A stretch of DNA of 64,000 nucleotides, taken from IMG/VR virus record IMGVR_UViG_3300024239_000013, positions 1 through 64,000 of that record, one strand, 5' to 3'. Shown in pieces: positions 4,912 through 64,000 of this stretch. Position numbers and translations under genes: made by a program. The notes under the pieces were generated by a model, which was not told the DNA's origin, ran no database searches, and saw only the letters and a program-made list of their open reading frames with translations. Position 1 is the first letter of the stretch, and each line of letters opens with the position of its first letter.

Positions 4912-5133
4912 TTATTTATTTATAGCTCCTTTTTGGTTGAACATGTTATAGTTAACGGTAATTTTTTTACCTCTCTCGTCAATTAATATTAAGACGTCCC
5001 CGGTTTCTGTTACTTTATAATCAATTCCCATATATTTAACACTCTGTCCAGGTTTAAGGGATTTGAAATCTTCTACAGAGATCTTTTCACCGTATTTTTT
5101 GATAAATCCTTCAAATAATTCTAGGTTCTTCAT
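4912..5133 (-). CDS. Small hypothetical protein with CTS-like N-terminus (MKNLELFEGF)
   Basis: Start re-called at 5133, which removes the overlap and exposes the shared N-terminal motif. Confidence 0.7.
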   Translation of the reverse strand: MKNLELFEGFIKKYGEKISVEDFKSLKPGQSVKYMGIDYKVTETGDVLILIDERGKKITVNYNMFNQKGAINK

Positions 5134-5150
5134 AGTTGGTTTAATATTAA

Positions 5151-5378
5151 TTAACAAAATTCTTTTTTTGCTTCCCAAAAATCCTCAGCAGATAGCTTCC
5201 ATCCTTTTTTCTTAGATGCCACGTAAGCCTGTGCATCTTTTAGATTTGGATTGCAGTCATCTTTCTTACATTTTTCAAAGTATGATTTGAGGTCACCGTA
5301 CACTGCTTGACTGATCCCAGTCTTTTCTTGTATTTTGCTTTCGTTAATAAAAGAACTAAATGATTTTATATTTTCCAT
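5151..5378 (-). CDS. Small hypothetical protein with CTS-like N-terminus (MENIKSFSSFINES)
   Basis: Shared N-terminal motif; GATATATA box at 5404-5411. Confidence 0.8.
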   Translation of the reverse strand: MENIKSFSSFINESKIQEKTGISQAVYGDLKSYFEKCKKDDCNPNLKDAQAYVASKKKGWKLSAEDFWEAKKEFC

Positions 5379-5402
5379 AAGGATTCTTTATTTTTTATCT
5401 TT

Positions 5403-5690
5403 CTATATATCCTCATTCATTTCAATTATAAGCTGGAGATCACCGGTTCCTTTTATAATTCTGTGCCAAATCCCCTTTGGAATCTTTATCCTAGTATTTA
5501 TTGGAATTGGTAACTCATTATCCATTTGAAACATCCAATCGGTTTTGTGAACAGGATGTATTGTTCTATTTTCATCGTCCCAGTGCCATTTAAACTCTTC
5601 GTCTCCTGTGGTTTCTCTAAATGTACGAACAACTATCTTATTTGAAGAAGTTGTTAAAACAACTTCTTCAAAAGGAAATTCTTCTACCAT
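5403..5690 (-). CDS. Small cupin-like protein
   Basis: WHWD.E and IPKGIWHRIIKG cupin-like metal motifs. Confidence 0.65.
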   Translation of the reverse strand: MVEEFPFEEVVLTTSSNKIVVRTFRETTGDEEFKWHWDDENRTIHPVHKTDWMFQMDNELPIPINTRIKIPKGIWHRIIKGTGDLQLIIEMNEDI

Positions 5691-6265
5691 GGTCTGCTTG
5701 ATTTAATACCTAAAAGTTTTCTATATCTTGCTACATTGCAAGCCCACCATCTAGGTTTCCATCTAGGTCCTGGATTATCACATCTCATTCTTTTCTGGAA
5801 AGATCTTGCCTTTTCTGGATCGTCGTTATTCACTCTCATACCGGGTTGGCCGAATCCGACCTTAATAACATTACCCTTATCGTTCTTGGTATAAACTGCA
5901 AATTTTCTAGGACCTCCTGGTGTTCTGAATGGTTTATTTAAATTGACATTCTTTCCTCTATATTCAGCTTCGTCGACATCGCCTTCGTAGAATGGCACAT
6001 CCAAAAGAACTCTTTCCCCTTCATATTCCCCGGTTCTCCCCGCATCAGTGGAGACTAGAAAAAGATCGTCTTCGTTAAGATCTATAATGTTTCTCTCCCA
6101 AAGATCTCTAGCTTCGTTAACGATATCTAGCCATGCTTCAGATTCTATTCTATATACGCTCTCCATCAGAGGTAGTTCCCTGTCTATATGATATCGCAAA
6201 CCTTCACTAATTGATGGTTCTTTTTCTTCATAGTGAAGAGATTCGAAATTCTTGATGTATTTCAT
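5684..6265 (-). CDS. Conserved phage protein, CTS-like N-terminus, basic C-terminal domain
   Basis: MKYIKNFES start; KFAVY..KVGFG..RSF..R..C..WWAC domain recalled from phage proteins; GATATATA at 6330-6337. Confidence 0.75.
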   Translation of the reverse strand: MKYIKNFESLHYEEKEPSISEGLRYHIDRELPLMESVYRIESEAWLDIVNEARDLWERNIIDLNEDDLFLVSTDAGRTGEYEGERVLLDVPFYEGDVDEAEYRGKNVNLNKPFRTPGGPRKFAVYTKNDKGNVIKVGFGQPGMRVNNDDPEKARSFQKRMRCDNPGPRWKPRWWACNVARYRKLLGIKSSRPW

Positions 6266-6587
6266 ATGATTTTTTTAAGTTGTCTTATTTATATTTATAT
6301 TAAAATATTGAATGGTGTTATTAGTATTTTATATATCAGAATATTCAGGGGTTTAATTTTTTCTCCCGTATTTTTGGTTTAATTTTGCTCCTGTAATTCT
6401 AAATGAAAAACAAGAAAAGAAGCTATATGATTATCATTTCTATCATTTTATTTAAGTTGGTTTCAACCAGGTTAAAGAACCGAACAAAAAGATTGGGTAC
6501 CTGAAACTATAACCAGATTCACCAATATAGATAGGAGTTAATTTATAAAGTTTCAAAAAAAAAGAGATTATAATGGCATTGAATAGA

Positions 6588-7490: not shown

Positions 7491-7537
7491 TTGGTTAAAG
7501 TAAAATAATTTTAAAAAAGGATGCACTCTCCTTATTT

Positions 7538-7577
7538 AAAACGCCAGACTTCTAAATTCATAGTCTGGCGTTTTTTA
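7538..7577. terminator. Bidirectional intrinsic terminator between convergent genes
   Basis: AAAACGCCAGACT...AGTCTGGCGTTTTTT hairpin. Confidence 0.8.
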
Positions 7578-7597
7578 TTATTCATAAATCTATTTTT

Positions 7598-9467: not shown

Positions 9468-9523
9468 GGTTCTTTATAGATGGTTCTTTATAGATGGTTC
9501 TTTATAGATGGTTCTTTATAGAT
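9468..9523. repeat. Four perfect 14-bp tandem repeats GGTTCTTTATAGAT (iteron-like)
   Basis: Read directly; follows a (TAGAG)n tract near 9352-9376 and precedes a C-run-rich GC island at 9524-9765. Confidence 0.95.
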
Positions 9524-26832: not shown

Positions 26833-27630
26833 ATGGATAAAATAAAATCATTTGACCAGTTTTTAAACGAAGCTCAGTTCAATATAAAAAACCCCGGTGA
26901 GACTGCTGACGCATTAGCAAATATCATTAAGGCTAATAGGAATGTTAAGGAAACCCCAAAGGGTAGTAACGCTGGAACCGAGGTGGCAAAATATCTGAAG
27001 AGTGTGGGTCTTCCCCCAGGTTTACCTTGGTGTGCAGCCTTTGTTTACTACATATTTTCTGAGTTATCTAAAAAACTTAACGTACCTAATCCTTTATCTA
27101 AGACCGGCGGTGTAATGCAGCAATGGGAATCTGCATCAAATGACATTAAGATAACAGCAGATAGAGCTAGAATGGATCACAAACTAATCAGACCAGGTCA
27201 GGTTTTCATTATGAGAAGACCTGGAAGAGGCTTGGGCCACATGGGGATAATAATAAATGTTAACCTTTCTAAAGGAACATTCACCTCTATAGAAGGTAAC
27301 ACCAATGATAAATTATCAGGGGAAGGGGATAGAGTTGGAGTTAATGTTAGAAGAATTGATTCTAAGGATTTAGTTGGATTCATAGACTATTTTAAGAACC
27401 AGAGAGATACTGGATTTGAAAATAAGCTATCCAAAGCAGTTGACGGTAAGGCATCGATGTTACCCCCGGTGGAAGGCGGACCTGAAGATGATGTTGTAGG
27501 AAAGGGTGAATTTGGATCAGCAGGAGATGATGCTATAGATAAAAGCTTCGGAGGAATGCTACTTAGTACTCTTGGAGGAAAGGATCTAACCGTCGGTGAG
27601 GTTAGTAACATGTTAAGCAAATTGAGATAG
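26833..27630 (+). CDS. CHAP-type peptidoglycan hydrolase with CTS-like N-terminus
   Basis: PWCAAFV, GHMGII, IEGNT; MDKIKSFDQFLNE start. Confidence 0.85.
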   Translation: MDKIKSFDQFLNEAQFNIKNPGETADALANIIKANRNVKETPKGSNAGTEVAKYLKSVGLPPGLPWCAAFVYYIFSELSKKLNVPNPLSKTGGVMQQWESASNDIKITADRARMDHKLIRPGQVFIMRRPGRGLGHMGIIINVNLSKGTFTSIEGNTNDKLSGEGDRVGVNVRRIDSKDLVGFIDYFKNQRDTGFENKLSKAVDGKASMLPPVEGGPEDDVVGKGEFGSAGDDAIDKSFGGMLLSTLGGKDLTVGEVSNMLSKLR

Positions 27631-39495: not shown

Positions 39496-39509
39496 TATAA
39501 AGAAGCATA

Positions 39510-40205
39510 ATGAAAAGAATCTCAAATTATAAAACATTCATAAATGAAAGTACAGGTGCAAGTACATTGACTGCAGAACAGATCGATTTCCTTGATAGAT
39601 GTGTTAGAGGAACGTGGAAGCTGAATGATGAAGAATTTGTTGATGTTGATGGGAATTTTGATTGTTTCAATAAAGGAATATCTGACTTTAAAGGAATAAA
39701 GTTTGGTAAGGTTAATGGAGATTTTGATTGTTCATATAATAATTTAAGTTCTTTGGAAGGATGTCCAAAAGAAGTTGTTGGACATTTTGATTGCTCACAT
39801 AACAAATTATCTTCATTAGAATTTGCTCCGGAAAGGGTGAGAAGTAGTTTTTATTGCTCACACAACAACTTAACCTCATTAGAATTTGCTCCGGAAAGGG
39901 TGAAAAATAGTTTTTATTGTCAGAATAACAGCTTAACCTCATTAGATGGGGTTCCTAAAAAAGTTGGAGGATTTTTTTATTTTGATCATAATGAAGGGAT
40001 TTCTTCAGAAACCTTAAAAATGATATCCATCCAAATGAAAGTAATCAAATCTGATTATAAAACAGTTTTAAAATCTTTATGGAGTGAAATACCAGTAGAA
40101 GACAAAGTACTTTTATATTCATCAGATCTAGATTGGGTTGAAGAAGATGAAGGATCTAAATTATCTAATCTAAAGAAGTATAAAAACATAAAGAAAATGA
40201 TCTAA
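39510..40205 (+). CDS. LRR array paralogue 2 (4 repeats)
   Basis: Same caps and repeat. Confidence 0.95.
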   Translation: MKRISNYKTFINESTGASTLTAEQIDFLDRCVRGTWKLNDEEFVDVDGNFDCFNKGISDFKGIKFGKVNGDFDCSYNNLSSLEGCPKEVVGHFDCSHNKLSSLEFAPERVRSSFYCSHNNLTSLEFAPERVKNSFYCQNNSLTSLDGVPKKVGGFFYFDHNEGISSETLKMISIQMKVIKSDYKTVLKSLWSEIPVEDKVLLYSSDLDWVEEDEGSKLSNLKKYKNIKKMI

Positions 40206-40221
40206 TATAATATAAAGCAAC

Positions 40222-41106
40222 ATGATGAAAAGAATCTCGAATTATAAAACATTCATAAACGAAAGCTCGAGTGAAAATAAGCTGACTCAGAAACAACTTG
40301 ATTTTCTTAACAACCACGTTAAGGGATATTGGAAGTTGAATGCTGGAGTTGTTGATGTTGATGGCGATTTTGATTGTTTTAGTAAAGGGATATCAGACTT
40401 TAAAGGAATAGTGTTTGGAAAGGTTAGCGGAGATTTTGATTGCTCACGTAATAATTTAAGTTCTTTAAAAGGTGCTCCTAAAGAGGTTGGTGGACATTTT
40501 GATTGTTCACATAACAACTTAAAATCATTAGAAGGAGCTCCAAAACAGGTTAGTGGAGATTTTGATTGCTCACGTAATAATTTAAGTTCTTTGGAAGGTG
40601 CTCCTAAAGAGGTTGGTGGACATTTCCATTGTTCATACAACAAATTAACATCATTAGAAGGTTGTCCTAAAGAAGTTGGTGGACATTTTTATTGTTATGT
40701 TAACAAATTAACCTCATTAGAATTTGGTCCTAAAGAAGTTGGTGGAGATTTCGATTGCTCTGACAACAAATTAACCTCATTAGAATTTGGTCCCGAAGAG
40801 GTTGGGAGAAGCTTTAATTGCTCAAATAACAAATTAACATCATTAGAAGGAGCTCCTAAAGAAGTTGGTGGAGATTTACGATTTTCTCATAATGAGGGAA
40901 TATCAACCAAAACGATAGGTCTTATATTTGACAAAATGAAAAAGTCCAAATTGGACTATTCTGATGCTTTAAAATCTTTATGGAAAGAAATACCAGTAGA
41001 AGACAAAGTACTTTTATATTCATCAGATCTAGATTGGATTGAAGAAGATGAAGCGTCTAAATTAGTTAAGTTAAAGAAGTATAATAGCATAAAGAAAATG
41101 ATCTAA
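40222..41106 (+). CDS. LRR array paralogue 3 (7 repeats)
   Basis: Same caps and repeat. Confidence 0.95.
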   Translation: MMKRISNYKTFINESSSENKLTQKQLDFLNNHVKGYWKLNAGVVDVDGDFDCFSKGISDFKGIVFGKVSGDFDCSRNNLSSLKGAPKEVGGHFDCSHNNLKSLEGAPKQVSGDFDCSRNNLSSLEGAPKEVGGHFHCSYNKLTSLEGCPKEVGGHFYCYVNKLTSLEFGPKEVGGDFDCSDNKLTSLEFGPEEVGRSFNCSNNKLTSLEGAPKEVGGDLRFSHNEGISTKTIGLIFDKMKKSKLDYSDALKSLWKEIPVEDKVLLYSSDLDWIEEDEASKLVKLKKYNSIKKMI

Positions 41107-41125
41107 TATAATATAAAGAAGCATA

Positions 41126-42010
41126 ATGAAAAGAATCTCAAATTATAAAACATTCATAAACGAAAGCTCGAGTGAAAGTACGCTAACACCTGAACAAATT
41201 AATTTCCTTAACAATTATGTTAAGGGATATTGGAAGTTGAATGCTGATGGAGTTGTTGATGTAGATGGCCATTTTAGTTGTTTCAATAAAGGGTTATCAG
41301 ACTTTAAAGGAATAGTGTTTGGAAAGGTTAATAGAGATTTTGATTGTTCAAACAACAACTTAACCTCATTAGAAGGCTGTCCAAAAAAAGTTGGGGGAGA
41401 TTTTTTTTGTTATGTTAACAAATTAACCTCTTTAAAAGGATCGCCAAAAGAGGTTGGTGGTAGTTTTATTTGTTCAGGTAATAACATAATCACATTGGAA
41501 GATGCACCTAAAAAAACCAGAAGAAGCTTTGATTGCTCACATAATAAATTAACATCATTAGAATTCGGTCCAAAAGAGGTTGGAGGCAATTTTAACTGCT
41601 CGCATAATAAATTAACATCATTAGAAGGTGCTCCTGAAGAAGTTGGTGTGGATTTTTATTGTTATTATAACGAATTGAATAATCTAAAGGGTTCCTCGTA
41701 TGTAGTTGGAAGAGATTTTAACTGCTCGGATAATAAATTAACATCATTAGAAGGAGCTCCAAAAGAAATTGGAGATGATTTCATATTAGAAGATAATGAA
41801 GGTGTTTCTTCAGAAATCTTAAAAGAGATATTTAGAAAAATGTTAGAATCCAAATTGGACTATAAAACAGTTTTAAAATCTTTATGGAAAGAAATCTCAA
41901 TAGAAGATAAAATACTTTTATACACACCAGATCTAGACTGGGTTGAAGAAGATGAAGGGTCCAAATTAGTTAAGCTAAAGAAGTATAGCAACATAAAGAA
42001 AATGATCTAG
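41126..42010 (+). CDS. LRR array paralogue 4 (7 repeats)
   Basis: Same caps and repeat. Confidence 0.95.
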   Translation: MKRISNYKTFINESSSESTLTPEQINFLNNYVKGYWKLNADGVVDVDGHFSCFNKGLSDFKGIVFGKVNRDFDCSNNNLTSLEGCPKKVGGDFFCYVNKLTSLKGSPKEVGGSFICSGNNIITLEDAPKKTRRSFDCSHNKLTSLEFGPKEVGGNFNCSHNKLTSLEGAPEEVGVDFYCYYNELNNLKGSSYVVGRDFNCSDNKLTSLEGAPKEIGDDFILEDNEGVSSEILKEIFRKMLESKLDYKTVLKSLWKEISIEDKILLYTPDLDWVEEDEGSKLVKLKKYSNIKKMI

Positions 42011-42024
42011 TATAAATCAGCATA

Positions 42025-42969
42025 ATGAAAAGAATAATAAATTATAAAACATTCGTAAATGAAAGTTCAGGTGCAAGTACACTGACAACTGAACAAATAG
42101 ATTTCCTTAACAGGTATGTTAGGGGGAAATGGAAGTTGAATGCTGGAGTTGTTGATGTTGATGGCGATTTTGATTGTTTTAGTAAAGGGATATCAGACTT
42201 TAAAGGAATAGTGTTTGGAAAGGTTAGCGGAGATTTTGATTGCTCACGTAATAATTTAAGTTCTTTAAAAGGTGCTCCTAAAGAGGTTGGTGGACATTTT
42301 GATTGTTCACATAACAACTTAAAATCATTAGAAGATGCACCTAAAAAAACTGGACGTAGTTTTTATTGTTCGTATAATAAATTAACCTCATTAGAATTTG
42401 CTCCGGAAAGGGTGAGAAGTAGTTTTCATTGTCAGAATAACAGCTTAACCTCATTAGAAGGAGCTCCTAAAGAAGTTGGAGGGTATTTCGATTGCTCAAG
42501 CAACAACTTAACCTCATTAGAAGGAGCTCCAAAAGAGATTGGGTATGATTTCGATTGCTCACACAACAACTTAACCACATTAGAAGGCTGTCCAAAAGAA
42601 ATTGTTGAAGATTTCGATTGCTCACACAACAACTTAACCACATTGGAATTCTCTCCAGAGAAAGTTGGTGTTAATTTTTATTGCTTCAATAACAACTTAA
42701 TTTCATTAAAAGGAGCTCCAAAAGAGATTGGATATGATTTCATATTAAAAAATAATGAAGGAGCATCATCAGAAATCTTAAAAGAGATATTTAGAAAAAT
42801 GTTAGAATCCAAATTGGACTACTCTGATGTTTTAAAATCCCTTTGGGATGAAATACCAATAAAAGATAAAATAGTTCTATATACCCCTGATCTAGACTGG
42901 GTTGAAGAAGATGAAGCGTCTAAATTATCTAAGTTAAAGAAGTATAGCAACATAAAGAAAATGATCTAG
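42025..42969 (+). CDS. LRR array paralogue 5 (8 repeats; mosaic)
   Basis: Same caps and repeat; blocks identical to paralogues 2, 3, 4, 6 and 7. Confidence 0.95.
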   Translation: MKRIINYKTFVNESSGASTLTTEQIDFLNRYVRGKWKLNAGVVDVDGDFDCFSKGISDFKGIVFGKVSGDFDCSRNNLSSLKGAPKEVGGHFDCSHNNLKSLEDAPKKTGRSFYCSYNKLTSLEFAPERVRSSFHCQNNSLTSLEGAPKEVGGYFDCSSNNLTSLEGAPKEIGYDFDCSHNNLTTLEGCPKEIVEDFDCSHNNLTTLEFSPEKVGVNFYCFNNNLISLKGAPKEIGYDFILKNNEGASSEILKEIFRKMLESKLDYSDVLKSLWDEIPIKDKIVLYTPDLDWVEEDEASKLSKLKKYSNIKKMI

Positions 42970-42983
42970 TATAAATCAGCATA

Positions 42984-43868
42984 ATGAAAAGAATAATAAA
43001 TTATAAAACATTCGTAAATGAAAGTTCAGGTGCAAGTACACTGACAACTGAACAAATAGATTTCCTTAACAGGTATGTTAGGGGGAAATGGAAGTTGAAT
43101 AATGATGGGGTTGTTGATGTAGATGGGGATTTTAATTGTTTTAATAAAGGGTTATCAGACTTTAAAGAAATAAAATTTGGAAAAGTTACAGGATATTTTG
43201 ATTGCTCTAAGAACAACTTAACCTCATTAGAGGGTTCACCAAAAAAAGTTGGTGTAGATTTTTATTGTAGTCATAACAAATTAACCTCATTAGAAGGAGC
43301 GCCTATAGAAGTTTATAGAAGTTTCGATTGCAAGGGTAACAAATTAACCTCGTTAGAATTCGGTCCAAAAAAGGTGGAGGGAAATTTTATTTGTTCAATT
43401 AACAAATTAACCTCGTTAGAATTCGGTCCAAAAGGAGTTCCTGGAACTTTCAATTGTTCATTTAACAAATTAACCTCGTTAGAATTCGGTCCAAAAGAAG
43501 TCGGAAGTAGTTTTAATTGCTCATTTAACAACTTAACCTCATTAGAATTCTCTCCAGAGAAAGTTGATGTTGATTTTTATTGCTCGAATAATAAATTAAC
43601 ATCATTAGAAGGTGTCCCAAAAGAAATTGGTGGATATTTCTGGTGTTCTTATAATGTTGGACTATCGACAGATATAATAAATCTTATATTCAGAAAAATG
43701 ATAAAGTATAGATCTGATTATAAAACAGTTTTAAAATCTTTATGGAAAGAAATCTCAATAGAAGACAAGATACTTTTATATTCATCAGATCTAGATTGGA
43801 TTGAAGAAGATGAAGCGGCTAAATTAGCTAAGTTAAAGAAGTATAGCAACATAAAGAAAATGATCTAG
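42984..43868 (+). CDS. LRR array paralogue 6 (7 repeats)
   Basis: Same caps and repeat. Confidence 0.95.
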   Translation: MKRIINYKTFVNESSGASTLTTEQIDFLNRYVRGKWKLNNDGVVDVDGDFNCFNKGLSDFKEIKFGKVTGYFDCSKNNLTSLEGSPKKVGVDFYCSHNKLTSLEGAPIEVYRSFDCKGNKLTSLEFGPKKVEGNFICSINKLTSLEFGPKGVPGTFNCSFNKLTSLEFGPKEVGSSFNCSFNNLTSLEFSPEKVDVDFYCSNNKLTSLEGVPKEIGGYFWCSYNVGLSTDIINLIFRKMIKYRSDYKTVLKSLWKEISIEDKILLYSSDLDWIEEDEAAKLAKLKKYSNIKKMI

Positions 43869-43882
43869 TATAAATCAGCATA

Positions 43883-44830
43883 ATGAAAAGAATAATAAAT
43901 TATAAAACATTCATAAACGAAAGCTCGAGTGAAAATAACTTGACACCTGAACAGATATATTTCCTGAACAAGCAGATTAAGGGGAAATGGAAGTTGAATG
44001 CTGATGGGGTTGTTGATGTTGTTGGAAATATCCATTGTTCACATAGAGAAATATCGGACTTCAAGGGAATAAAATTCGGAAAAGTTACTGGGTATTTTGA
44101 TTGCTCAAATAACAACTTAACATCATTAGAGGGTTGTCCAAAAGAGGTTGGTGGACATTTTTATTGTTCATATAACAGCTTAACATCATTAGAGGGTTGT
44201 CCAAAAGAGGTTGGGGGACATTTTTATTGTCAACGTAACAACTTAACCTCATTAGAAGGTGGTCCAGAAAGAGTGAATGGAGATTTCATTTGTTATGGTA
44301 ACAAATTAGCTTCATTAGAATTTGGACCCAAGGAGGTTAGAGGTACTTTCGATTGCTCAAATAACAAATTAACATCCTTAGAAGGATGCTCTAAAGAGGT
44401 GAATGGAGATTTCGATTGCACATATAACAAATTAACATCATTAGAATTCTCTCCAGTTAAAGTTGGTGGTACTTTCGATTGTTCAGATAATAACTTAACC
44501 TCATTAGAATTTGGACCTGAAGATGTTGGGGGAGGCTTTAATTGTTCCCGTAATAAATTAACCTCATTAGAAGGAGCTCCTAAAGAAGTTGGAGGTACTT
44601 TACGATGTTTTTATAATGAGGGTTTATCAAACGAAACAATAGGTCTTATATTTGAAAAAATGATAAAATCCAGATTGGATTATAAAACAGTTTTAAAATC
44701 TTTATGGGGAGAAATACCAATAAAAGATAAAATAGTTCTATATACCCCTGATCTGGATTGGGTTGAAGGAGATGAAGCGGCTAAATTATCTAATCTAAAG
44801 AAGTATAGCAACATAAAGAAAATGATCTAA
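43883..44830 (+). CDS. LRR array paralogue 7 (8 repeats)
   Basis: Same caps and repeat. Confidence 0.95.
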   Translation: MKRIINYKTFINESSSENNLTPEQIYFLNKQIKGKWKLNADGVVDVVGNIHCSHREISDFKGIKFGKVTGYFDCSNNNLTSLEGCPKEVGGHFYCSYNSLTSLEGCPKEVGGHFYCQRNNLTSLEGGPERVNGDFICYGNKLASLEFGPKEVRGTFDCSNNKLTSLEGCSKEVNGDFDCTYNKLTSLEFSPVKVGGTFDCSDNNLTSLEFGPEDVGGGFNCSRNKLTSLEGAPKEVGGTLRCFYNEGLSNETIGLIFEKMIKSRLDYKTVLKSLWGEIPIKDKIVLYTPDLDWVEGDEAAKLSNLKKYSNIKKMI

Positions 44831-44846
44831 TATAATATAAAAAAAC

Positions 44847-45794
44847 ATGATGAAAAGAATAGTAAATTATAAAACATTCATAAACGAAAGCTCTGGTGAA
44901 AATAACCTGACCCCAGAACAAATTGATTTCCTTAACAACTATGTTAAGGGGAAATGGAAGTTTAATGTTGGAGTTGTTGATATTGATGGCGATTTTAGTT
45001 GTTTCGATAGAGGAATATCTGACTTTAAAGGAATAGTGTTTGGAAGGGTTACCGGTCATTTTGACTGTTCGGATAACAACTTAACATCATTAGAAGGTTG
45101 TCCAAAAGAGGTTGGTGGAAATTTTTATTGTCATTATAACAACTTAACCTCATTAGAAGGTTGTCCAAAAGAGGTTGGCGGACATTTTTATTGTCATTAT
45201 AACAACTTAACATCATTAGAAGGTTGTCCAAAAAAAGTGAATGGAGATTTCGATTGCACAGATAACAACTTAACCTCATTAGAATTCGGTCCAAAAGAGA
45301 TTAATGGACATTTTTATTGTTATGATAACAGCTTAACCTCATTAGAATTTGGTCCCGAAAGAGTGAATGGAGATTTTGATTGTTCGAATAACAACTTAAC
45401 CTCATTAGAATTTGGACCCAAAGAGGTTGGTGGTACTTTCGATTGCTCACGTAATAACTTAAGCTCGTTAGAAGGTGTTCCTGAAAAGCTGAACGGAGTT
45501 TTTTATTTCTCATGTAACAAATTAACCTCATTAGAAGGTGCTCCTAAAAAACTAGGATCACAATTTTTTTGTGAGAATAATGAAGGGATATCAACCAAAA
45601 CGATAAATCTTATATTTGACAAAATGGAAACCTCCAAATCTGATTATAAAACAGTTTTAAAATCTTTATGGAAAGAAATACCAATAGAAGATAAAATACT
45701 TTTATACACCCCAGATCTTGATTGGGTTGAAGAAGATGAAGGGTCTAAATTAGCTAAGTTAAAGAAGTATAGCAACATAAAGAAAATGATCTAA
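44847..45794 (+). CDS. LRR array paralogue 8 (8 repeats)
   Basis: Same caps and repeat. Confidence 0.95.
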   Translation: MMKRIVNYKTFINESSGENNLTPEQIDFLNNYVKGKWKFNVGVVDIDGDFSCFDRGISDFKGIVFGRVTGHFDCSDNNLTSLEGCPKEVGGNFYCHYNNLTSLEGCPKEVGGHFYCHYNNLTSLEGCPKKVNGDFDCTDNNLTSLEFGPKEINGHFYCYDNSLTSLEFGPERVNGDFDCSNNNLTSLEFGPKEVGGTFDCSRNNLSSLEGVPEKLNGVFYFSCNKLTSLEGAPKKLGSQFFCENNEGISTKTINLIFDKMETSKSDYKTVLKSLWKEIPIEDKILLYTPDLDWVEEDEGSKLAKLKKYSNIKKMI

Positions 45795-45812
45795 TATAAT
45801 ATAAAGAGCACA

Positions 45813-46508
45813 ATGAAAAGAATAGTAAATTATAAAACTTTCATAAATGAAAGTGCAGGTGCAAGTACACTGACTTCAGAACAGATAGATTTCCTTAACA
45901 ACTATGTTAAGGGGAAATGGAAGCTGAATGGTGAAGGATTTATTGATATAGATGGTGATTTTAGTTGTTTCGATAAAGGGTTATCAGACTTTAGATGGAT
46001 AAAATTTGGAAAAGTTACAGGGTATTTTTATTGTTCATATAATGGATTGACATCATTAGAGGGAGCACCAAAAAAAGTTGGTTTGAGTTTTTATTGTCAT
46101 AATAACAAATTAACATCATTGGATGGCTCTCCTAAAGAGATTGGTGGAAATTTCGATTGCTCTGACAACAAATTAACCTCATTAGAATTCTCACCCGAAA
46201 GTGTAAAGGGGAGCTTTGATTGCTCATATAACAACTTAACATCATTAGAATTTGGTCCTAAAGAAGTTGGCGGAGATTTACGATTTTCTCATAATGAGGG
46301 ATTGTCAACCAAAACGATAGGTCTTATATTTGACAAAATGGAAAAGTCCAAATTGGACTATAAAACAGTTTTAAAATCTTTATGGAAAGAAATACCAATA
46401 GAAGATAAAATACTTTTATACAATGCGGATCTAGATTGGATTGAAGGAGATGAAGCGGCTAAATTAGCTAAGTTGAATAAATATAGCAACATAAAGAAAA
46501 TGATCTAA
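45813..46508 (+). CDS. LRR array paralogue 9 (4 repeats)
   Basis: Same caps and repeat. Confidence 0.95.
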   Translation: MKRIVNYKTFINESAGASTLTSEQIDFLNNYVKGKWKLNGEGFIDIDGDFSCFDKGLSDFRWIKFGKVTGYFYCSYNGLTSLEGAPKKVGLSFYCHNNKLTSLDGSPKEIGGNFDCSDNKLTSLEFSPESVKGSFDCSYNNLTSLEFGPKEVGGDLRFSHNEGLSTKTIGLIFDKMEKSKLDYKTVLKSLWKEIPIEDKILLYNADLDWIEGDEAAKLAKLNKYSNIKKMI

Positions 46509-46527
46509 TATAATATAAAGAAACATA

Positions 46528-47412
46528 ATGAAAAGAATAGTAAATTATAAAGCATTCATAAACGAAATCTCGAGTGAAAATAACTTGACACCAGAACAGA
46601 TAGATTTCCTTAACAGGTATGTTGAGGGGAAATGGAAGTTGAATGCTGATGGAGCTGTTGATGTAGATGGCGATTTTAGTTGTTTCGATAAAGGGTTATC
46701 AGACTTTAAAGGAATAGTGTTTGAGAAGATTAGTGGAGATTTTGACTGTTCGGCTAACAGCTTAATATCATTAGAAGGTTGTCCAAAAGAGGTTAATGGA
46801 TATTTTTATTGTCATTATAACAAACTAACCTCATTAGAATTTGGTCCTGAAAGTGTAGATGGAGATTTCGATTGTTCGAATAACAATTTAACTTCATTAG
46901 AATTTGGACCCAAAGAGGTTGGTGGAAATTTTGACTGTTCATACAACAAATTAACCTCATTAGAAGTCTGTCCAAAAAAAGTTGGGGGAACTTTCAATTG
47001 TTCATTTAATAAATTAACATCATTAGAATTCAGTCCAAAAGAGGTTGGTGGTAGTTTCAATTGCTCATTTAACAACTTAACATCGTTGCAATTCTCTCCA
47101 GAGAAAGTTGATGCTTATTTTCATTGTTCAAATAACAACTTAACCTCATTAGAAGGGGTATCAAAAGAAGTTGGAGGGAATTTAAGATGTTTTTATAATG
47201 AAGGGCTATCAACCGAAACAATAAATCTTATATTTGACAAAATGATAAAGTCCAAATTGGACTATTCTGATGCTTTAAAATCTTTATGGAAAGAAATACC
47301 AGTAGAAGACAAAGTACTTTTATACACACCCGATCTAGATTGGGTTGAAGAAGACGAAGCGTCTAAATTAGCTAAGCTAAAGAAGTATAGCAGCATAAAG
47401 AAAATGATCTAG
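46528..47412 (+). CDS. LRR array paralogue 10 (7 repeats)
   Basis: Same caps and repeat. Confidence 0.95.
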   Translation: MKRIVNYKAFINEISSENNLTPEQIDFLNRYVEGKWKLNADGAVDVDGDFSCFDKGLSDFKGIVFEKISGDFDCSANSLISLEGCPKEVNGYFYCHYNKLTSLEFGPESVDGDFDCSNNNLTSLEFGPKEVGGNFDCSYNKLTSLEVCPKKVGGTFNCSFNKLTSLEFSPKEVGGSFNCSFNNLTSLQFSPEKVDAYFHCSNNNLTSLEGVSKEVGGNLRCFYNEGLSTETINLIFDKMIKSKLDYSDALKSLWKEIPVEDKVLLYTPDLDWVEEDEASKLAKLKKYSSIKKMI

Positions 47413-47426
47413 TATAAAGAAGAATA

Positions 47427-48374
47427 ATGAAAAGAATAGTAAATTATAAAACTTTTATAAACGAAAGTTCAGGTGCAAGTACACTGACAACTGAACAGAT
47501 AGATTTCCTTAACAGGTATGTTAAGGGGAAATGGAAGTTGAATGATAATGGAGTTGTTGATGTTGATGGTGATTTTAGTTGTTCCGATAAAGAAATATCA
47601 GACTTTAAAGGAATAATATTTGGAAAAGTTACCGGTCATTTCTATTGCTCAAGTAACAACTTAAGATCATTAGAAGGTTGTCCCAAAGAGGTTGGAGGGG
47701 GTTTCAATTGCTCACGTAATGAATTAACATCATTGGAAGGTTGTCCAGAAAGGGTGAATGGAGATTTCATTTGTTATGGTAACAACTTAACCTCATTAGA
47801 AGGTTGTACAGAAAGAGTGAATGGAGATTTCATTTGTTCGGCTAACAACTTAACCTCATTAGAAGGCTGCCCTAAGGAAGTTGAGGGATTTTTCAATTGT
47901 TCATTTAATAAATTAGCTTCTTTAGAAGGATGTCCTGGAGAAATTGGAAGTAGTTTTTATTGTTCGTATAACAAATTAACCTCATTAGAATTTGGCCCAG
48001 AAATGGTGAATGGAGATTTCGTTTGTTCAGATAACAAATTAACCTCGTTAGAATTCAGTCCAAAAGAAGTTGGTGGTAATTTTATTTGTTCAGATAACAA
48101 CTTAACATCATTAGAGGGAATATCAAAAAAAGTTGGGGGATCTTTATGGTGTTCTTCTAATGAAGGACTATCAACCGAAACGATAGATCTTATATTTGAT
48201 AAAATCATAAAGTTCAAATTGGACTATTTGGATGCTTTAAATTTTTTATGGGAGGATATCCCAATAGAAGATAAAGTACTTTTATACACACCCGATTTAG
48301 ATTGGATTGAAGGAGAGGAAGCGGTTAAATTATCTAATCTAAAGAAGTATAGTAAAATAAAGAAAATGATATAA
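47427..48374 (+). CDS. LRR array paralogue 11 (8 repeats)
   Basis: Same caps and repeat. Confidence 0.95.
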   Translation: MKRIVNYKTFINESSGASTLTTEQIDFLNRYVKGKWKLNDNGVVDVDGDFSCSDKEISDFKGIIFGKVTGHFYCSSNNLRSLEGCPKEVGGGFNCSRNELTSLEGCPERVNGDFICYGNNLTSLEGCTERVNGDFICSANNLTSLEGCPKEVEGFFNCSFNKLASLEGCPGEIGSSFYCSYNKLTSLEFGPEMVNGDFVCSDNKLTSLEFSPKEVGGNFICSDNNLTSLEGISKKVGGSLWCSSNEGLSTETIDLIFDKIIKFKLDYLDALNFLWEDIPIEDKVLLYTPDLDWIEGEEAVKLSNLKKYSKIKKMI

Positions 48375-48418: not shown

Positions 48419-48877
48419 ATGAGATATATTCAACTTTACGAGAACTTCTCGGTATTAAATGAGACTACCATTGATAGATTTAGTCCTGATGTTATTAGAG
48501 GTCAAGATGCAATCGATTCTCAATTTTTTAATAAATTGATGCCAAAAACAGCAAAAACAACATCAGAAGCTCAGAACAGGATATTATCATTTTCTGGCGG
48601 TACTATGTTTGTACATTATCAATACTTCATTGTTACACCAAAGGGAAATACCCCCGATAGACCTATTTATAGAATACATAATAGCCAATATTGGTTAAAT
48701 GACTACCAATTAATTAGGCAGGGTAAAAATGGACAGGATGTAAACGTAACCGAGATTTACATAACCGACATTACAGATCCCAAAAACGAGATTAGACTCG
48801 GATCGGTTTATGTTGATACTAGAATTTATTTAGATGAACAAAAAATTGTTTTTGATGTACTCAAGAGTCATTCATAA
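48419..48877 (+). CDS. Hypothetical protein with CTS-like N-terminus (MRYIQLYENFSVLNE)
   Basis: Shared N-terminal motif. Confidence 0.8.
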   Translation: MRYIQLYENFSVLNETTIDRFSPDVIRGQDAIDSQFFNKLMPKTAKTTSEAQNRILSFSGGTMFVHYQYFIVTPKGNTPDRPIYRIHNSQYWLNDYQLIRQGKNGQDVNVTEIYITDITDPKNEIRLGSVYVDTRIYLDEQKIVFDVLKSHS

Positions 48878-49495: not shown

Positions 49496-49771
49496 ATGAA
49501 AAACATAAAACTATATGAAAATTTCATTAACGAAAAAATTTCATCCGAAGCTGTTTATATTCACAATATAACCGGTGCTGGACAACAATCTATTCAAAAC
49601 TTTATTGACGACAATAATATAGACGCTGATAAATTAGCGGAATATGTGAAAGTAAATAAGGATCATAAAGAAAAGTATGATGTAAGAGATATGATTTCAG
49701 GAACTGGACTAGGATCAGATAAAAATAGAAGAGAAAATTTTATTAAAAAATTCAAGAGAGGTAAAAAATAG
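49496..49771 (+). CDS. Small protein with CTS-like N-terminus (MKNIKLYENFINE)
   Basis: Shared N-terminal motif. Confidence 0.8.
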   Translation: MKNIKLYENFINEKISSEAVYIHNITGAGQQSIQNFIDDNNIDADKLAEYVKVNKDHKEKYDVRDMISGTGLGSDKNRRENFIKKFKRGKK

Positions 49772-50840: not shown

Positions 50841-51197
50841 ATGAAAAACCTAAAAGTTTATGAAAACTTCCTAATCAAATCTCCCGGATTAGATATCGAT
50901 ACAAATAAAAAAGAAATTAATCCAGGTTTTAATGACTATACAAAAAAACCAAATGTGACCCCTGAACAAGAAGCCATCAGAAATAAACTAGAATCTGATG
51001 TAAAGAGAATGTACCCAAAAATAGTTATAAAACATTCACCAGACGGACAATCAGGTGCATCTGTAGATAATATAGTTATTTACGCTACTGATCATTACGA
51101 CTCATTTAACGCATTCTTATTTGGTTTGGTGATGGGTAAGATTCATGGAAGCGAAATGCCAGCTAAAATGGCATCTAGAATAGGCGAAGATTTATAA
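50841..51197 (+). CDS. Hypothetical protein with CTS-like N-terminus (MKNLKVYENF)
   Basis: Shared motif; GATATATA at 50809. Confidence 0.8.
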   Translation: MKNLKVYENFLIKSPGLDIDTNKKEINPGFNDYTKKPNVTPEQEAIRNKLESDVKRMYPKIVIKHSPDGQSGASVDNIVIYATDHYDSFNAFLFGLVMGKIHGSEMPAKMASRIGEDL

Positions 51198-51327: not shown

Positions 51328-52131
51328 ATGAAAAAAATAGCATCATTTAATGAGTTTGTAAATGAGGATAACGGGCTTCTAGGACACATAGCTCCATTAT
51401 TGGGTAGCATTGAAATAGATGGTAAAAAAAAAGCAGAGGAAATTAGAAGCCAGGATACAGGTTCTGAGATTGATCAAGGTGATCTTTTACCGTCCGATTT
51501 TAATCCATTTCCAGGTAATGATGATTTCACTCTTTATATGCAACATCAGCAAGGAGTAGCTGGAGCAAAGGGATTAATAGAAGCATCTTTAGGAACTGGT
51601 AAATTAGCATCAGATACGATCAAAACCAAGAATGGTAAAAAATATGCAAATTTAATTTCAAATGTTCCTAGCGACAAACCTCAAATTAAAAATTCCATAA
51701 TAAAAGCATTAGACTCGGGTGATCAAAAAACTGCATCGGTTTTATTCCTAAATATGTGGAAGGAAAAATGGAACCGAGCATATAAAGATGCAAAGATCGA
51801 AATAGAAAAGCCACAAAACTCTACTGCTAAATCAGCTATAAAAAAATACAGTTCAGCATATGGGGTTCCTTTTGATTTTGCTATAACCGTAGCAAAATTG
51901 GAATCCGGATTTAAGCCTAATGTAGGAAACAATACCTATAAAGGATTATTTGCTCTAAGTCAAAATGGATTTAATAAATATGTTCCTGGAGGAAATATTT
52001 TTAACCCAGATGATAATGCTAAAGCAGGAATTCAAAGTCTAAGAGATAATATAAAAGAATTCAAAAAACAACTAGGTGATAAAACTCTAGCCTCTCTTAA
52101 TATTGCTCAATGGGCAAAAAATATAGCTTAA
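51328..52131 (+). CDS. SLT-type lytic transglycosylase with CTS-like N-terminus
   Basis: AKLESGFKP, YKGLF, FNPDDNAKAG; MKKIASFNEFVNE. Confidence 0.8.
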   Translation: MKKIASFNEFVNEDNGLLGHIAPLLGSIEIDGKKKAEEIRSQDTGSEIDQGDLLPSDFNPFPGNDDFTLYMQHQQGVAGAKGLIEASLGTGKLASDTIKTKNGKKYANLISNVPSDKPQIKNSIIKALDSGDQKTASVLFLNMWKEKWNRAYKDAKIEIEKPQNSTAKSAIKKYSSAYGVPFDFAITVAKLESGFKPNVGNNTYKGLFALSQNGFNKYVPGGNIFNPDDNAKAGIQSLRDNIKEFKKQLGDKTLASLNIAQWAKNIA

Positions 52132-53199: not shown

Positions 53200-53556
53200 A
53201 TGGAAAAAATGATAAAAAATTACAATAATTTTATTAATGAGTCCAAAAAAGAATCTTTTGAAGAGTTTTCTTTAATTAGATTAAACGGGGCTAAAAAAAT
53301 AGCAGAAAATGCTAAAGAAAAAGGTGGTGATGCTCTACTTACTTACCATCATTTTAAAGTTAAGATACCAACTTATAAAAAAGCTAAAGATGGTGAATTT
53401 GATATGATAAATTCTAAAAAAGAATATGAAACCCTTTTAGAAAAATTATATAAATCAACCAAGGATAATATGAAAATAAGCCAAGTTGAATTTCAGGAAT
53501 TGGTTGGTAGAATAGAAGTATTAGGAGAACTTATTATCAGAAAGGAGATAGAATAA
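53200..53556 (+). CDS. Hypothetical protein with CTS-like N-terminus (MIKNYNNFINES)
   Basis: Shared motif; GATATATA at 53188. Confidence 0.8.
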   Translation: MEKMIKNYNNFINESKKESFEEFSLIRLNGAKKIAENAKEKGGDALLTYHHFKVKIPTYKKAKDGEFDMINSKKEYETLLEKLYKSTKDNMKISQVEFQELVGRIEVLGELIIRKEIE

Positions 53557-59371: not shown

Positions 59372-59944
59372 ATGTTAAATTTAAAAACTTTCGCTCTTTT
59401 TGAATCAAATAATTATAACTTTACTCTAGAAGATGTAAGAAAACTACCACTATATTCACGTTTAGTTAAAATGGGATTTGAAGACACCACCACTGATAGA
59501 ATATGGAATAATGGGAATATGAGATTTTATAATTATCAACTAAGAATGACTAATCCTGAATATTCACTAACCATATATGGTAATGGACCGATCAGAAAAA
59601 CGACTATGGGCAATCCTTATATTCTTAAAAGATTTCCTGAAATAAAAAGTTTGGAAGATTTTAATCTAAGATTCTATTATGTGATGAAATGGGGTAAAAA
59701 ACTTTATAAAAAAATTCATAAAAAAGAAATTGATTTTCAATTATCACCAGACGAGAAAAAATCAATTACCAAGGTTCTAGTAGATATATATAAAGAAATA
59801 GGAGCTATTCCATTTTTACCCACTTATAATTCTTTATCTGATGATGAAAAGGATGATTTTTTAAAGGAAATAAATCAAACAAAAGAAAGATTTGAAAAAA
59901 ATATAAAAAGTTATTTAAGAATTAGAAAAATAGCTTTTCTATAA
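59372..59944 (+). CDS. Hypothetical protein with CTS-like N-terminus (MLNLKTFALFES)
   Basis: Start re-called; AATATATA box upstream. Confidence 0.75.
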   Translation: MLNLKTFALFESNNYNFTLEDVRKLPLYSRLVKMGFEDTTTDRIWNNGNMRFYNYQLRMTNPEYSLTIYGNGPIRKTTMGNPYILKRFPEIKSLEDFNLRFYYVMKWGKKLYKKIHKKEIDFQLSPDEKKSITKVLVDIYKEIGAIPFLPTYNSLSDDEKDDFLKEINQTKERFEKNIKSYLRIRKIAFL

Positions 59945-61955: not shown

Positions 61956-62525
61956 ATGTCAAAGTTAGTTTCAGTAATGGGTGCTCCAAGTTCAGGTAAG
62001 AGTACTTTAGCAACCTCAGTTCATCACGGACTAAAGATAAGAAAAAAGAATTCTGTTTTTGTAGGAGAGGCTGCAACGGACTATATAGCGGAATGGGGAG
62101 TTCCTGACAGTCCAACAGATCAGATAGTTATTTTTTATAAGCAGCTCAGTAGAGAAAATATGTACAAAGATTCCAAGGAATGGGTTATTTGTGACTCTAG
62201 CTCTATATTAAATTATTTCTATTTTAGATCTTTGTTTAATTCTAAATTAAGTTTAAAGGATATTGCGACAATTAATCATATACAGAAGGAAATTCTAAAA
62301 TCCATAAACCAATGGCACAAAATTTATTACGTTCCCCCTTTTTTAGATGACGAAGATCCTGTAGATGGTATAAGATTCCATGATAGAGAGGATATAATTA
62401 AGATAGACGGAATGATTCGAAATTATTTAGATCTGGAAAATATAGAATATACTGATTTGACAAATATACCCATAGATGAAAGGGACCAGTGGGTAATAAA
62501 TGATCTATTAAAATCTAGAAAATAG
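61956..62525 (+). CDS. NadR/AAA_28-type P-loop kinase
   Basis: GAPSSGKST, E.A, ICDSS, DGIR; class II promoter. Confidence 0.8.
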   Translation: MSKLVSVMGAPSSGKSTLATSVHHGLKIRKKNSVFVGEAATDYIAEWGVPDSPTDQIVIFYKQLSRENMYKDSKEWVICDSSSILNYFYFRSLFNSKLSLKDIATINHIQKEILKSINQWHKIYYVPPFLDDEDPVDGIRFHDREDIIKIDGMIRNYLDLENIEYTDLTNIPIDERDQWVINDLLKSRK

Positions 62526-62969
62526 TTATCTTACTGGTATTACAATGTCTGGCGAATTCTTTAAAAAGTATTCGCTATTTTTTATGGCTTTATTTAACGA
62601 AGTTTCTTTTATAGTTTCTCTCCAATTGATTGTTTTATTCTTATTTAAACCAATCTTAAGATTCTTTATACTGGTCCATTTTTCTATATAAGTTGGATCA
62701 TATGGAAGTTTTTTAGATTTCATATTTCCTTCCTCGTCTTTAACTATACCATAAAATTCTGGATATAATGTAGCCATATTAACCGGAATCCCTTCTTTAC
62801 CTCCAACCTTATATCGGGAAAGCTCATTTACACTTTTTACCTGAGCAGCAAAAATGTTACATTTGCCCTCCTTGTTTTTCTTACCTTTTATTAAAAGCCA
62901 TCCACCAAGAGACCATTTTATCCCTTGGTTGTTCCATTGGTTATATTCTAATATATTCTCCATATCCAT
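62526..62969 (-). CDS. Hypothetical protein (MENILEYNQW, weak CTS-like start)
   Basis: 147-aa ORF. Confidence 0.7.
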   Translation of the reverse strand: MDMENILEYNQWNNQGIKWSLGGWLLIKGKKNKEGKCNIFAAQVKSVNELSRYKVGGKEGIPVNMATLYPEFYGIVKDEEGNMKSKKLPYDPTYIEKWTSIKNLKIGLNKNKTINWRETIKETSLNKAIKNSEYFLKNSPDIVIPVR

Positions 62970-63018
62970 ATATATTTAATAAAATATTGGATATATAAAT
63001 AAAATAAGTGAATATGAA

Positions 63019-63282
63019 ATGAAAAAGTTTTTTATAGATTTGTTATCAGGGCAAACTGAGGTGTCAAGTAAGAGATTTGCTGCTCTTTTTGCATTAGTAA
63101 ATTTGGTGATTCTAACTTGGATTGCCACTTTAAATGATGATAATTTAATTACACCTGAATTTATGTTTGATGCATTACTAATGATCGCGGGAGGTGGTTT
63201 CGGTCTAAGCGTTGTGGAAAAAGTTCTGACTACAAAAAATTCTAAAAAAACTGATTCAAACGAACAAAACCCTACAATATGA
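63019..63282 (+). CDS. Holin-like two-TM protein
   Basis: SSKRF + TM + TM + charged tail; GATATATA at 62990. Confidence 0.55.
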   Translation: MKKFFIDLLSGQTEVSSKRFAALFALVNLVILTWIATLNDDNLITPEFMFDALLMIAGGGFGLSVVEKVLTTKNSKKTDSNEQNPTI

Positions 63283-63545
63283 AAAATTTAAAACCGTTTG
63301 AAGATTATAACATTTCGAATTTAGACGAGGCTCTAGAAGAGTCTTCATGTTTAAGCGAGAATGCTAAGAATGAATTGAAAAGAATCTGTGAAGAGTATTT
63401 AGTTAAAGAAGCTATCGATTATGATGAAGATGATTATGATGAGCATACATACGATGGGTATGTAGAAGAGACCGCTAATTATATTAAAGAATGTTTAGGT
63501 AGACCCGGATATTCATCTTTAGATAAACCATACACAACACAATAA
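63279..63545 (+). CDS. Acidic protein with CTS-like N-terminus (MKNLKPFEDY)
   Basis: Shared motif. Confidence 0.75.
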   Translation: MKNLKPFEDYNISNLDEALEESSCLSENAKNELKRICEEYLVKEAIDYDEDDYDEHTYDGYVEETANYIKECLGRPGYSSLDKPYTTQ

Positions 63546-63546
63546 T

Positions 63547-64000
63547 ATGAGTAGATTGGTAAAATTTGATAAATATAAATCAGAAATCAAAGAATCTGAG
63601 GAGGAAGAATTTACATATAGCCTTGATGAAATTTCGGATGCTCTTGATTCAGTGGAAGATGATCTAATTAATTACATAGAAATTCATAATATAGAAATTT
63701 TAGATGTTGACCACGACGAAACTCGCGACGGAGAGGTGGTATTAAAGCCGATAATTGGTGAACATTCTGACCTTGTCTATGACTATAATACAGACCTAAA
63801 TGATTTAATTTTAAAAGAGCTTTCAAAATCAGGTAATGACGGACTTAAACCCCGATTTAATTCTGACGTTATATTTAATGCTATAGATTTAGTTTCTTCT
63901 TACATTGGAAAATATGTAAATGATGTATCGATGGATGATATAGAAATAGAATATGAAACAAGGTCCGGAAATTTTAATGAGATAACTGTAACATTCCTGA
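63547..64000 (+). CDS. Partial acidic protein (MSRLVKFDKYKSEIKES), runs off the window
   Basis: ATG at 63547, frame appears open to the end. Confidence 0.7.
   Translation, partial: MSRLVKFDKYKSEIKESEEEEFTYSLDEISDALDSVEDDLINYIEIHNIEILDVDHDETRDGEVVLKPIIGEHSDLVYDYNTDLNDLILKELSKSGNDGLKPRFNSDVIFNAIDLVSSYIGKYVNDVSMDDIEIEYETRSGNFNEITVTFL

Follow-up and report, generated by a model that had tools for sequence, protein, structure and literature searches.

Does the short peptide that opens many proteins of an uncultivated jumbo phage direct them into the phage head? The question is raised by the first 64 kb (64,000 nucleotides; hereafter, the window) of the 319,334-bp IMG/VR record IMGVR_UViG_3300024239_000013, a genome with G+C content of 31% and 437 open reading frames (ORFs), in which 11 leucine-rich repeat (LRR) paralogues and a set of unrelated proteins start with one and the same leader, called here the tag. 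An earlier note on this DNA had described the leader on about 25 proteins and interpreted it as a portable packaging tag resembling the capsid-targeting sequence (CTS) of T4. This interpretation is supported, as every in-silico check (of the protease, the capsid protein, the promoter class, and the residues functional in T4) is in its favor. We estimate the probability that the shared leader is a T4-type CTS, that is, a short, unstructured, and cleavable one, at about 0.75, with packaging, cleavage, and injection proposed by analogy with T4.

The tag consensus is M-K-x-I-K-x-[FY]-x-x-F-[ILV]-N-E, 13 residues at the protein N-terminus. The strict core, [YFW]xx[FWY][ILVM]xE at 3–9 residues past the start, is seen in 21 genes, which are the 11 LRR paralogues and 10 genes for unrelated proteins, five inside the window and five outside. 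With paralogues collapsed, 11 proteins carry the strict core (offset ≤10), versus a mean of 1.1 and a maximum of 4 over 200 shuffles. A position matrix built from the strong tags places seven of its nine best non-seed matches, proteome-wide, within five residues of a start. Under a gapped model (an aromatic half, I-K-x-F-x-x-F, then an allowed gap, then the [ILV]-N-E site), 23 N-termini other than those of the LRR proteins score above every one of the 1104 internal-Met control windows, and 28 pass at 0.4 false positives expected; the aromatic half alone is found at 37 of 413 N-termini, with 7.5 expected. Among all strong tags, [FY]-x-x-[FW] is invariant and [ILV]-N-E follows directly after the second aromatic.

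Translation confirms the leader on the genes listed in the earlier note, although its count was too low, the family comprising about 40 of the 437 ORFs, and the listed genes differ in how complete their tags are. With genes denoted by their start positions, the full contiguous form [IV]-K-x-[FY]-x-x-F-[ILV]-N-E is present in the 11 LRR genes and in 5378(-), 26833(+), 49496(+), 51328(+), and 53209(+); in 48419, 6265, 63279, and 63547 the aromatic half is intact and the [LIV]xE is displaced; 5133, 36991, and 50841 retain the aromatic half only, with no Glu site; and 59372 is weak. The tag is portable, the mature parts behind it being mutually unrelated (Pfam CHAP, SLT, LRR, ADK, ATP-grasp, or no match). 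Codons at the conserved residues of ten non-paralogous tags are mixed: Asn is encoded by AAC and AAT in the ratio 5:5, Phe by TTT and TTC in the ratio 5:4, Ile by three codons, and Ser switches between TCN and AGY. Synonymous codons thus vary freely, and therefore it is the peptide that is conserved, and neither a nucleotide element nor a cassette copied recently.

The T4 CTS is MKTYQEFIAE (PMC8442874), as the earlier note had quoted it. Amber-suppressor mutagenesis in T4 assigns residues 4 and 7 to targeting and residues 8 and 10 to processing; Asp at position 10 blocks cleavage, while targeting is kept; the protease gp21 cuts after L/I-X-E and acts on assembled proheads (PMC9026906). At the level of sequence correspondence, the invariant [FY], F, [ILV], and E of the tag fall exactly on T4 Y4, F7, I8, and E10, with Y-E-N-F-I-N-E at 49496 as an example. 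The T-even internal proteins are a diverse set with only the conserved CTS in common (PMC3012670). Multiple cleavage sites have been described in T4 and phiKZ propeptides (PMC5694885), and some leaders hold a second xNE site a few residues further on.

A gp21-like protease, which the earlier note suggested seeking elsewhere in the genome, is present and adjoins the gp23-type capsid gene (PF03420, 33.8 bits, above the cut-off; phrog_207, E 8e-39). The ORF at 276072-278060 (-) encodes 662 aa, with an S77 protease domain in the first ~230 residues fused to a scaffold-like C-terminal half. BLASTP against T4 gp21 aligns GELDHP and ISSR with GELNHP and VSSR of T4, and sets His78 and Ser133 opposite H85 and S140, which we take to be the catalytic residues. 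The scaffold half contains 14 tandem 14-residue units, I-x-Y-[ST]-[EK]-Y-[LIV]-A-E-N-[LV]-D-K-x, each with an [LIV]-A-E, and further sites besides; the units are kept at 10–14 copies in 53 relatives, with fewer in more distant ones. As T4 gp22 contains KLAE, KIAE, and EWLAEN...DKGI, the repeats look like an amplified version of the gp22 motif. The capsid protein begins MKLINE..P-I-I-E-S...Y-H-S-L-N-E↓S-A-G (here and below, the arrow marks the predicted cleavage point), and its three [LIV]-x-E sites, the middle one in the form P[IL][IV]E, are invariant in 52 relatives. Parallels are found in T4, where gp24 begins MAKINELLRE↓S, and gp23 has PLLE and is cut after FGSFLTE65 (precursor of 521 residues, mature PDB chain of 456). 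Judged from these capsid-protein and T4 sites, the protease specificity would therefore include I-N-E and L-N-E.

The tag and the scaffold units have in common only a generic skeleton and the [LIV]-x-E site. Mimicry of a single scaffold unit by the tag was considered and rejected, since a position-specific scoring matrix (PSSM) of the 14 units puts only one of its 40 top matches at an N-terminus, and in relatives with 51–55% protease identity the units have the form Y-x-E-H-[VL]-A-E.

The most enriched upstream 8-mer of the genome is GATATATA (13.6-fold), with 45 of 55 copies lying ≤150 nt upstream of a same-strand start. Among the genes that follow it are the protease-scaffold, portal, tail sheath, neck, and fibre-like genes, and, given these genes and a gp55-type sigma factor in the genome, it is best read as a late promoter. 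Of 21 independent tagged genes, 13 have the box upstream, compared with 29 of the 406 other genes (odds ratio 21, p = 1.4e-9); the tagged genes with the box that lie in the window are 5378, 6265, 26833, the first LRR gene, 50841, 51328, and 53200. The spacing to the start ranges from 12 to 72 nt. The portal, sheath, and fibre genes have the late promoter and no tag; the tag is therefore not a general property of late genes. A second conserved upstream element, long and very different (TTTTTATC...TTACATTTAC; …AATTATTTTTTTATCTGGTTTATTTTTCTTACATTTACACCATAATTAA…), precedes 21 mostly small genes genome-wide and probably marks an early promoter class, the class I of the earlier note; in the window it is seen at 11618-35876 (- strand) and also at 52521-53102 and 61270-61827. 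The absence of the tag from class I-promoter genes, as observed in that note, holds, none of the 21 early-promoter genes being tagged. A copy of the late-promoter box (AGATATATAAAG) also lies inside the protease-scaffold ORF, at about codon 208, with an in-frame Met234 after it; box and Met together suggest a nested scaffold product, as in phages with overlapping protease and scaffold genes.

Outside this genome, the DNA pattern for [YF]xx[FLCW]xNE has 48 matches in five large relatives versus 11 for the reversed control, and most of these matches open an ORF, including orthologues of the adenylate-kinase and ATP-grasp genes. A stricter pattern, M-x-x-I-K-x-F-x-x-F-[ILFM]-N-E, has at least 144 matches in IMG/VR, nearly all ≤25 codons from an upstream in-frame stop. 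Among the matches listed, the free positions converge on MKHIKLFEQFINE↓S, and the 120 unique proteins fall into at least 93 unrelated clusters headed by MKHIKLFEQFINE. The same protease-scaffold fusion is found on each of the four contigs tested (51–55% identity in the protease domain). On the 34-kb contig IMGVR_UViG_3300031566_000207, seven consecutive tagged small genes (94–165 aa) are found within 5 kb, at ~7500-12500; they begin MK[HNY]IK[TS]FE[DQS]FINE and form a cargo array analogous to the LRR array, made of other proteins.

Further away the pattern fades. FxxF[ILF]NE is at background in PTm1, LR756500, Lak-A1, LR756502, and Flavobacterium phage MaF61, despite their homologous proteases, and therefore the exact tag belongs to a defined, closer clade, of which it is a general feature; no such leader or repeat is seen in the head module and scaffold of PTm1. 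A looser pattern applied to T4, Pelagibacter phage Mosig, PTm1, and YerA41 performs no better than the control, though the two T4 YQEFIAE copies are recovered. In the T4-like Mosig (MT647606.1, 1519-2904), the ATP-grasp ("glutathione synthetase") homologue starts MQVQPFKNYLEE↓A, with the same skeleton; such a CTS-like leader in a member of Kyanoviridae suggests that the ATP-grasp enzyme may be head cargo there too. The ATP-grasp homologue of Yersinia phage YerA41 (34% identity) is annotated as "structural protein"; this hint is too weak to count, because even ribonucleotide reductase is listed in that record as a particle component.

Other roles for such a leader can be envisaged. It could be a propeptide that the protease removes and that keeps CHAP, SLT, and similar proteins inactive or regulated, without directing them into the head. 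The [ILV]-N-E site fits the predicted specificity of the protease, and several of the cargo proteins are hydrolases, which would do damage in the cytoplasm; however, by analogy with T4 gp21, the substrate would still need to be inside the prohead (PMC9026906), there is no activity to be masked in the LRR and small basic proteins, and the most conserved part of the tag, which some members keep alone, is the aromatic half, corresponding to the targeting half in T4 (PMC9026906). A purely regulatory propeptide is thus quite improbable. There is likewise little probability that the leader is a signal for another destination (tail or baseplate, membrane, chaperone, or secretion), resembling the CTS by convergence. 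Peptidoglycan hydrolases are often tail-associated in other phages, and enzymes of this class are among the tagged proteins; the tagged protein at 75135-75533 has a hydrophobic segment directly after the tag; and more distant relatives with the same protease family do not have the motif. Yet the leader lacks a hydrophobic core of the signal-peptide kind, no tag is present on the sheath and fibre-like tail genes that were checked, several tag-like genes lie in the head module beside the capsid and protease genes, and all four functional T4 positions coincide.

Conservation might also operate at the nucleic-acid level, with a promoter-plus-leader cassette spread by recombination or shuffling, or with an A/T-rich start that boosts translation. 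Free synonymous variation at the conserved residues, including the Ser switch, argues against it, as do the late genes without the leader, the variable promoter-to-start spacing, and the retention of the leader on diverged orthologues in relatives; so, even though many tagged genes have promoter, spacing, and leader in common, and the leader is A/T-rich, we consider this explanation very unlikely.

Several points weigh against a T4-type CTS as well, beginning with the fact that the whole interpretation is drawn from analogy with T4. Identity between the protease and T4 gp21 is only 27%, so that the specificity of the former is deduced from candidate substrate sites. The tag is not enriched in the more distant relatives, and the link to T4 hence spans a gap without a traceable motif, as the background-level counts in PTm1 and the four other phages show. 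About 40 cargo species are far above the handful known in T4, which puts the room in the head in question; housekeeping-type enzymes, such as adenylate kinase, are unexpected cargo; and most LRR proteins are acidic (pI, isoelectric point, ~5), unlike the basic T4 internal proteins. The genes 5133, 36991, and 50841, having no Glu site, may be uncleaved or not real members; as a matter of speculation, proteins with the aromatic half and no Glu could be targeted yet uncleaved, cf. the Asp-10 result in T4.

If the leader is nevertheless a CTS of the T4 type, the following sequence of events can be proposed, in which core binding, residence in the virion, ejection, and cargo function are assigned by homology with T4. 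Late in infection, the gp55-like sigma factor would drive the GATATATA promoters, so that tagged and head proteins are made together. The aromatic half of the tag would bind the prohead core formed by the protease-scaffold protein, and the cargo would be enclosed as the gp23-type shell closes. The gp21-family serine protease would then cut after the Glu of [ILV]-x-E, freeing the mature cargo within the head, degrade the scaffold at its 14 [LIV]-A-E repeats, and remove the ~44-residue propeptide of the capsid protein (SLNE↓SAG). The cargo would stay with the DNA in the head and exit with it at infection, where CHAP, SLT, and another hydrolase-like protein may help in crossing the cell wall.

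The largest block of tagged genes in the window is the LRR array at 38668..48374 (+), with starts at 38668, 39510, 40225, 41126, 42025, 42984, 43883, 44850, 45813, 46528, and 47427. Each of the 11 paralogues begins M-K-R-I-x-N-Y-K-T-F-[IV]-N-E↓S-S-G; the first has its start Met at 38668, inside ORF 38629, and GATATATA at 38597-38604 before it. In the alignment of the LRR proteins, M1, I4, N6, Y7, K8, F10, and E13 are invariant, and the linker after the tag varies. The AlphaFold model of gene 41126 has a mean pLDDT (predicted local distance difference test) of 91.5, with residues 1–16 below 50 and the fold starting from about residue 20. According to this model the tag is a disordered appendage, and in the adenylate kinase, too, it precedes the ADK domain. 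In fold, the model comes closest to the LRR domains of SspH1, IpaH, and YopM. The proteins end in a conserved helical domain of ~65 residues, and in Pfam they have LRR matches only, with no NEL E3-ligase or other catalytic domain. The family probably binds host proteins; to call its members effectors, as the earlier note did, presupposes that the cargo is present in the virion and is ejected, both of which we infer from the T4 analogy.

Other tagged genes of the window are scattered around this array. On the minus strand, the 75-aa gene at 5151..5378 (-) has the full tag MENIKSFSSFINE↓S (tag codons 5340-5378), with GATATATA at 5404-5411, 33 nt upstream; the mature part of its product (7 kDa, pI 8.8) resembles a T4 internal protein. 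The 73-aa gene at 4912..5133 (-) retains just the aromatic half (MKNLELFEGFIKK) without a Glu site; the 193-aa gene at 5684..6265 (-) has a variant tag (MKYIKNFESLHYEE...SISE↓G), whose gapped score of 10.5 exceeds all controls, and GATATATA at 6330-6337. A DUF5661 protein, at 36161..36991 (-), is a weak candidate with the aromatic half only (MIQKFESFLQGG).

On the plus strand, a CHAP peptidoglycan hydrolase (PF05257, E 1.6e-8) is encoded at 26833..27630 (+), with the full tag MDKIKSFDQFLNE↓A at 26833-26871 and GATATATA at 26801-26808. Downstream of the LRR array, the 152-aa gene at 48419..48877 (+) has a variant tag (MRYIQLYENFSVLNE↓T; gapped score 16.6), and the 91-aa gene at 49496..49771 (+) has a full one (MKNIKLYENFINE↓K; mature part 8.9 kDa, pI 9.4). 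The 118-aa gene at 50841..51197 (+) retains the aromatic half only (MKNLKVYENFLIKS), with GATATATA at 50809-50816. An SLT lytic transglycosylase (PF01464, E 1.1e-7), at 51328..52131 (+), has the full tag (MKKIASFNEFVNE↓D) and GATATATA at 51297-51304. The gene at 53200..53556 (+; 115/118 aa) has the full tag (MEK)MIKNYNNFINE↓S with the top PSSM score and GATATATA at 53188-53195; its mature part is 12 kDa with pI 8.7, and relatives have tagged proteins with a similar mature start (KETFEEF...RLAGATKI). The remaining copies are a weak candidate at 59372..59944 (+), MLNLKTFALFE↓S (MLNLKTFALFES); the 88-aa gene at 63279..63545 (+), with a variant tag (MKNLKPFEDYNISNLDE↓A); and the gene at 63547..64000 (+), which leaves the window (to 64116) and has a weak variant tag (MSRLVKFDKYKSEIKE↓S).

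Two further genes are found inside this island of tagged genes. One, at 48892-49476 (+), encodes an untagged Phage_lysozyme2 protein with an N-terminus hydrophobic from the internal Met27, where it probably starts; it is the better endolysin candidate, which leaves the tagged hydrolases as candidate entry enzymes. The other, at 49840-50802 (+), encodes a 320-aa LRR protein of a different type, with no clear tag.

Elsewhere in the genome, further tag copies are found at 77565, 172567 (a RimK-type ATP-grasp enzyme), 186452, 204663, 192717, 200599, 203183, 264873, 271290, and others. The adenylate kinase gene (185832-186452) has the tag MENIIKSFSGFLNE↓RELPDKQGK, with the ADK domain of Pfam following from residue 27. 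A weak tag is present on a protein with an endolysin-like segment (82818-83567), and the tag-like genes 264873, 270398, 271290, and 280714 are located beside the capsid and protease genes. The small basic tagged proteins (5378, 49496, 53200, and 270136; 7–12 kDa, pI 8.7–9.4) resemble T4 internal proteins. At 75135-75533 (-), the short tag-like leader MKKFSAFLME↓S runs straight into a hydrophobic segment of membrane-like character, which recalls gp47 of SPN3US, an ejection protein with a transmembrane helix at the start of its mature form (PMC5694885). PHROGs yields no function for most of the small tagged proteins; literature string searches for the leader returned no match, one query term being swamped by an English word, and in a comparative paper on jumbo phages (PMC7824862) there is no mention of LRR or of propeptides.

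Among the genes of the phage are those for a T4-type major capsid protein (PF07068, E 2.5e-41), two portal paralogues, a tail sheath, a neck protein, and a gp55-like late sigma factor. The nearest named relatives of the capsid protein (45–48% identity) belong to the huge "uncultured phage" LR756500 and the Prevotella Lak phages; weaker matches (<60% identity) are from Tenacibaculum, Chryseobacterium, Sphingomonas, and Flavobacterium phages. Judged by these relatives, a Bacteroidota host is likely. In IMG/VR, at least 80 loci have capsid proteins 72–91% identical. The portal paralogues stand in tandem at 289775-291442 and 291447-293036 (-; 555 and 529 aa, both phrog_213). A homing/HNH endonuclease gene (578 aa, 272503-274239 (-)) directly adjoins the major capsid gene; in PTm1, likewise, a Hef-like homing endonuclease is located closely downstream of the capsid gene. 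In the window, an Rfam tRNA match at 12195-12314 (-) (120 nt, 37 bits, gathering score 29), not called by ARAGORN, may be an intron-containing or degenerate tRNA; the stretch that holds it, 8.4–13 kb, is ORF-poor with higher G+C. A perfect 14-bp tandem repeat in four copies (GGTTCTTTATAGAT) occupies 9468-9523. Another ORF-poor stretch, at 36–38.5 kb (36000-38500; 43% G+C), contains 26-bp and 33-bp repeats (37393-37742) and CTTAGT-type simple repeats.

If the tag works as in T4, the proteins carried into the cell could be listed by a simple motif search, without culturing or proteomics; this would provide, for an abundant uncultured jumbo-phage clade, a catalogue of candidate entry enzymes, early-acting effectors, and anti-defence proteins. 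The T4 rule of diverse internal proteins with only the CTS in common would be extended to a distant lineage with larger and different cargo, the LRR array would gain a testable role, and a second natural packaging tag would be offered for loading foreign proteins into large capsids. More tentatively, at somewhat less than an even chance, the 13-residue label may make the whole injected head proteome of this clade (~300 kb, T4-type head, hosts probably Bacteroidota) readable from sequence: ~40 proteins per genome and, over the clade, more than 90 unrelated families, on a scale far beyond T4, with tandem arrays of diversified LRR binders as injected anti-host or anti-defence effectors and with adenylate kinase and ATP-grasp enzymes acting on the host at entry.

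Among known systems, the closest is T4 itself. As in IPI, IPII, IPIII, and the Alt propeptide, the leader runs from the initiator Met over 10–19 residues, has the form aromatic-x-x-aromatic-[I/L]-x-Glu, and is predicted to be cleaved after Glu; a homologous protease (S77 family), a gp22-like scaffold with many L/I-A-E sites, and a gp23-type shell are found in both; and the cargo proteins are unrelated, with only the leader in common, part of them being small and basic. Unlike T4, three extra residues (I-K-x) stand before the first aromatic; P2 is nearly invariant Asn here and Ala in T4; about 40 genes per genome are tagged, versus a handful; the cargo includes the 11 LRRs, the CHAP and SLT hydrolases, the adenylate kinase, and the ATP-grasp enzyme; and protease and scaffold share a single ORF, in which a nested scaffold start is probable, the system here being known from sequence only.

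The phages phiKZ, 201phi2-1, and SPN3US are also jumbo phages that package many head proteins, and their diverged gp21 homologue cuts after Glu in propeptides with redundant sites (PMC5694885, PMC9026906). However, these propeptides are 80–160 residues long and have no common short consensus, the cleavage motif is S/A/G-X-E or A-X-E, and the capsid lineage is different; phiKZ-type cargo is not readable from a short N-terminal motif, whereas here it apparently is.

The cargo has its own parallels. The type III effectors of the IpaH/SspH/YopM type have short repeats of 20–22 residues, like the phage LRRs, are the best structural match to the phage model, and recognise the target by their LRR. 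The phage proteins differ from IpaH, SspH, and SlrP in having, by Pfam, no NEL domain and in its place the C-terminal helical domain; delivery would be by the phage head, not by a secretion system, and the targets would be bacterial. The internal core protein gp16 of T7 has an N-terminal lytic transglycosylase domain and is carried in the capsid and ejected to help DNA entry; peptidoglycan-cutting head cargo is the role proposed here for the tagged SLT and CHAP proteins. Unlike these, gp16 is a large protein of the structural core and is incorporated with no cleaved leader of the T4 type. Taken against these systems, the present one is of a known kind, and its novelty lies in the lineage, the consensus form, how many genes are tagged, and what kind of cargo they encode.

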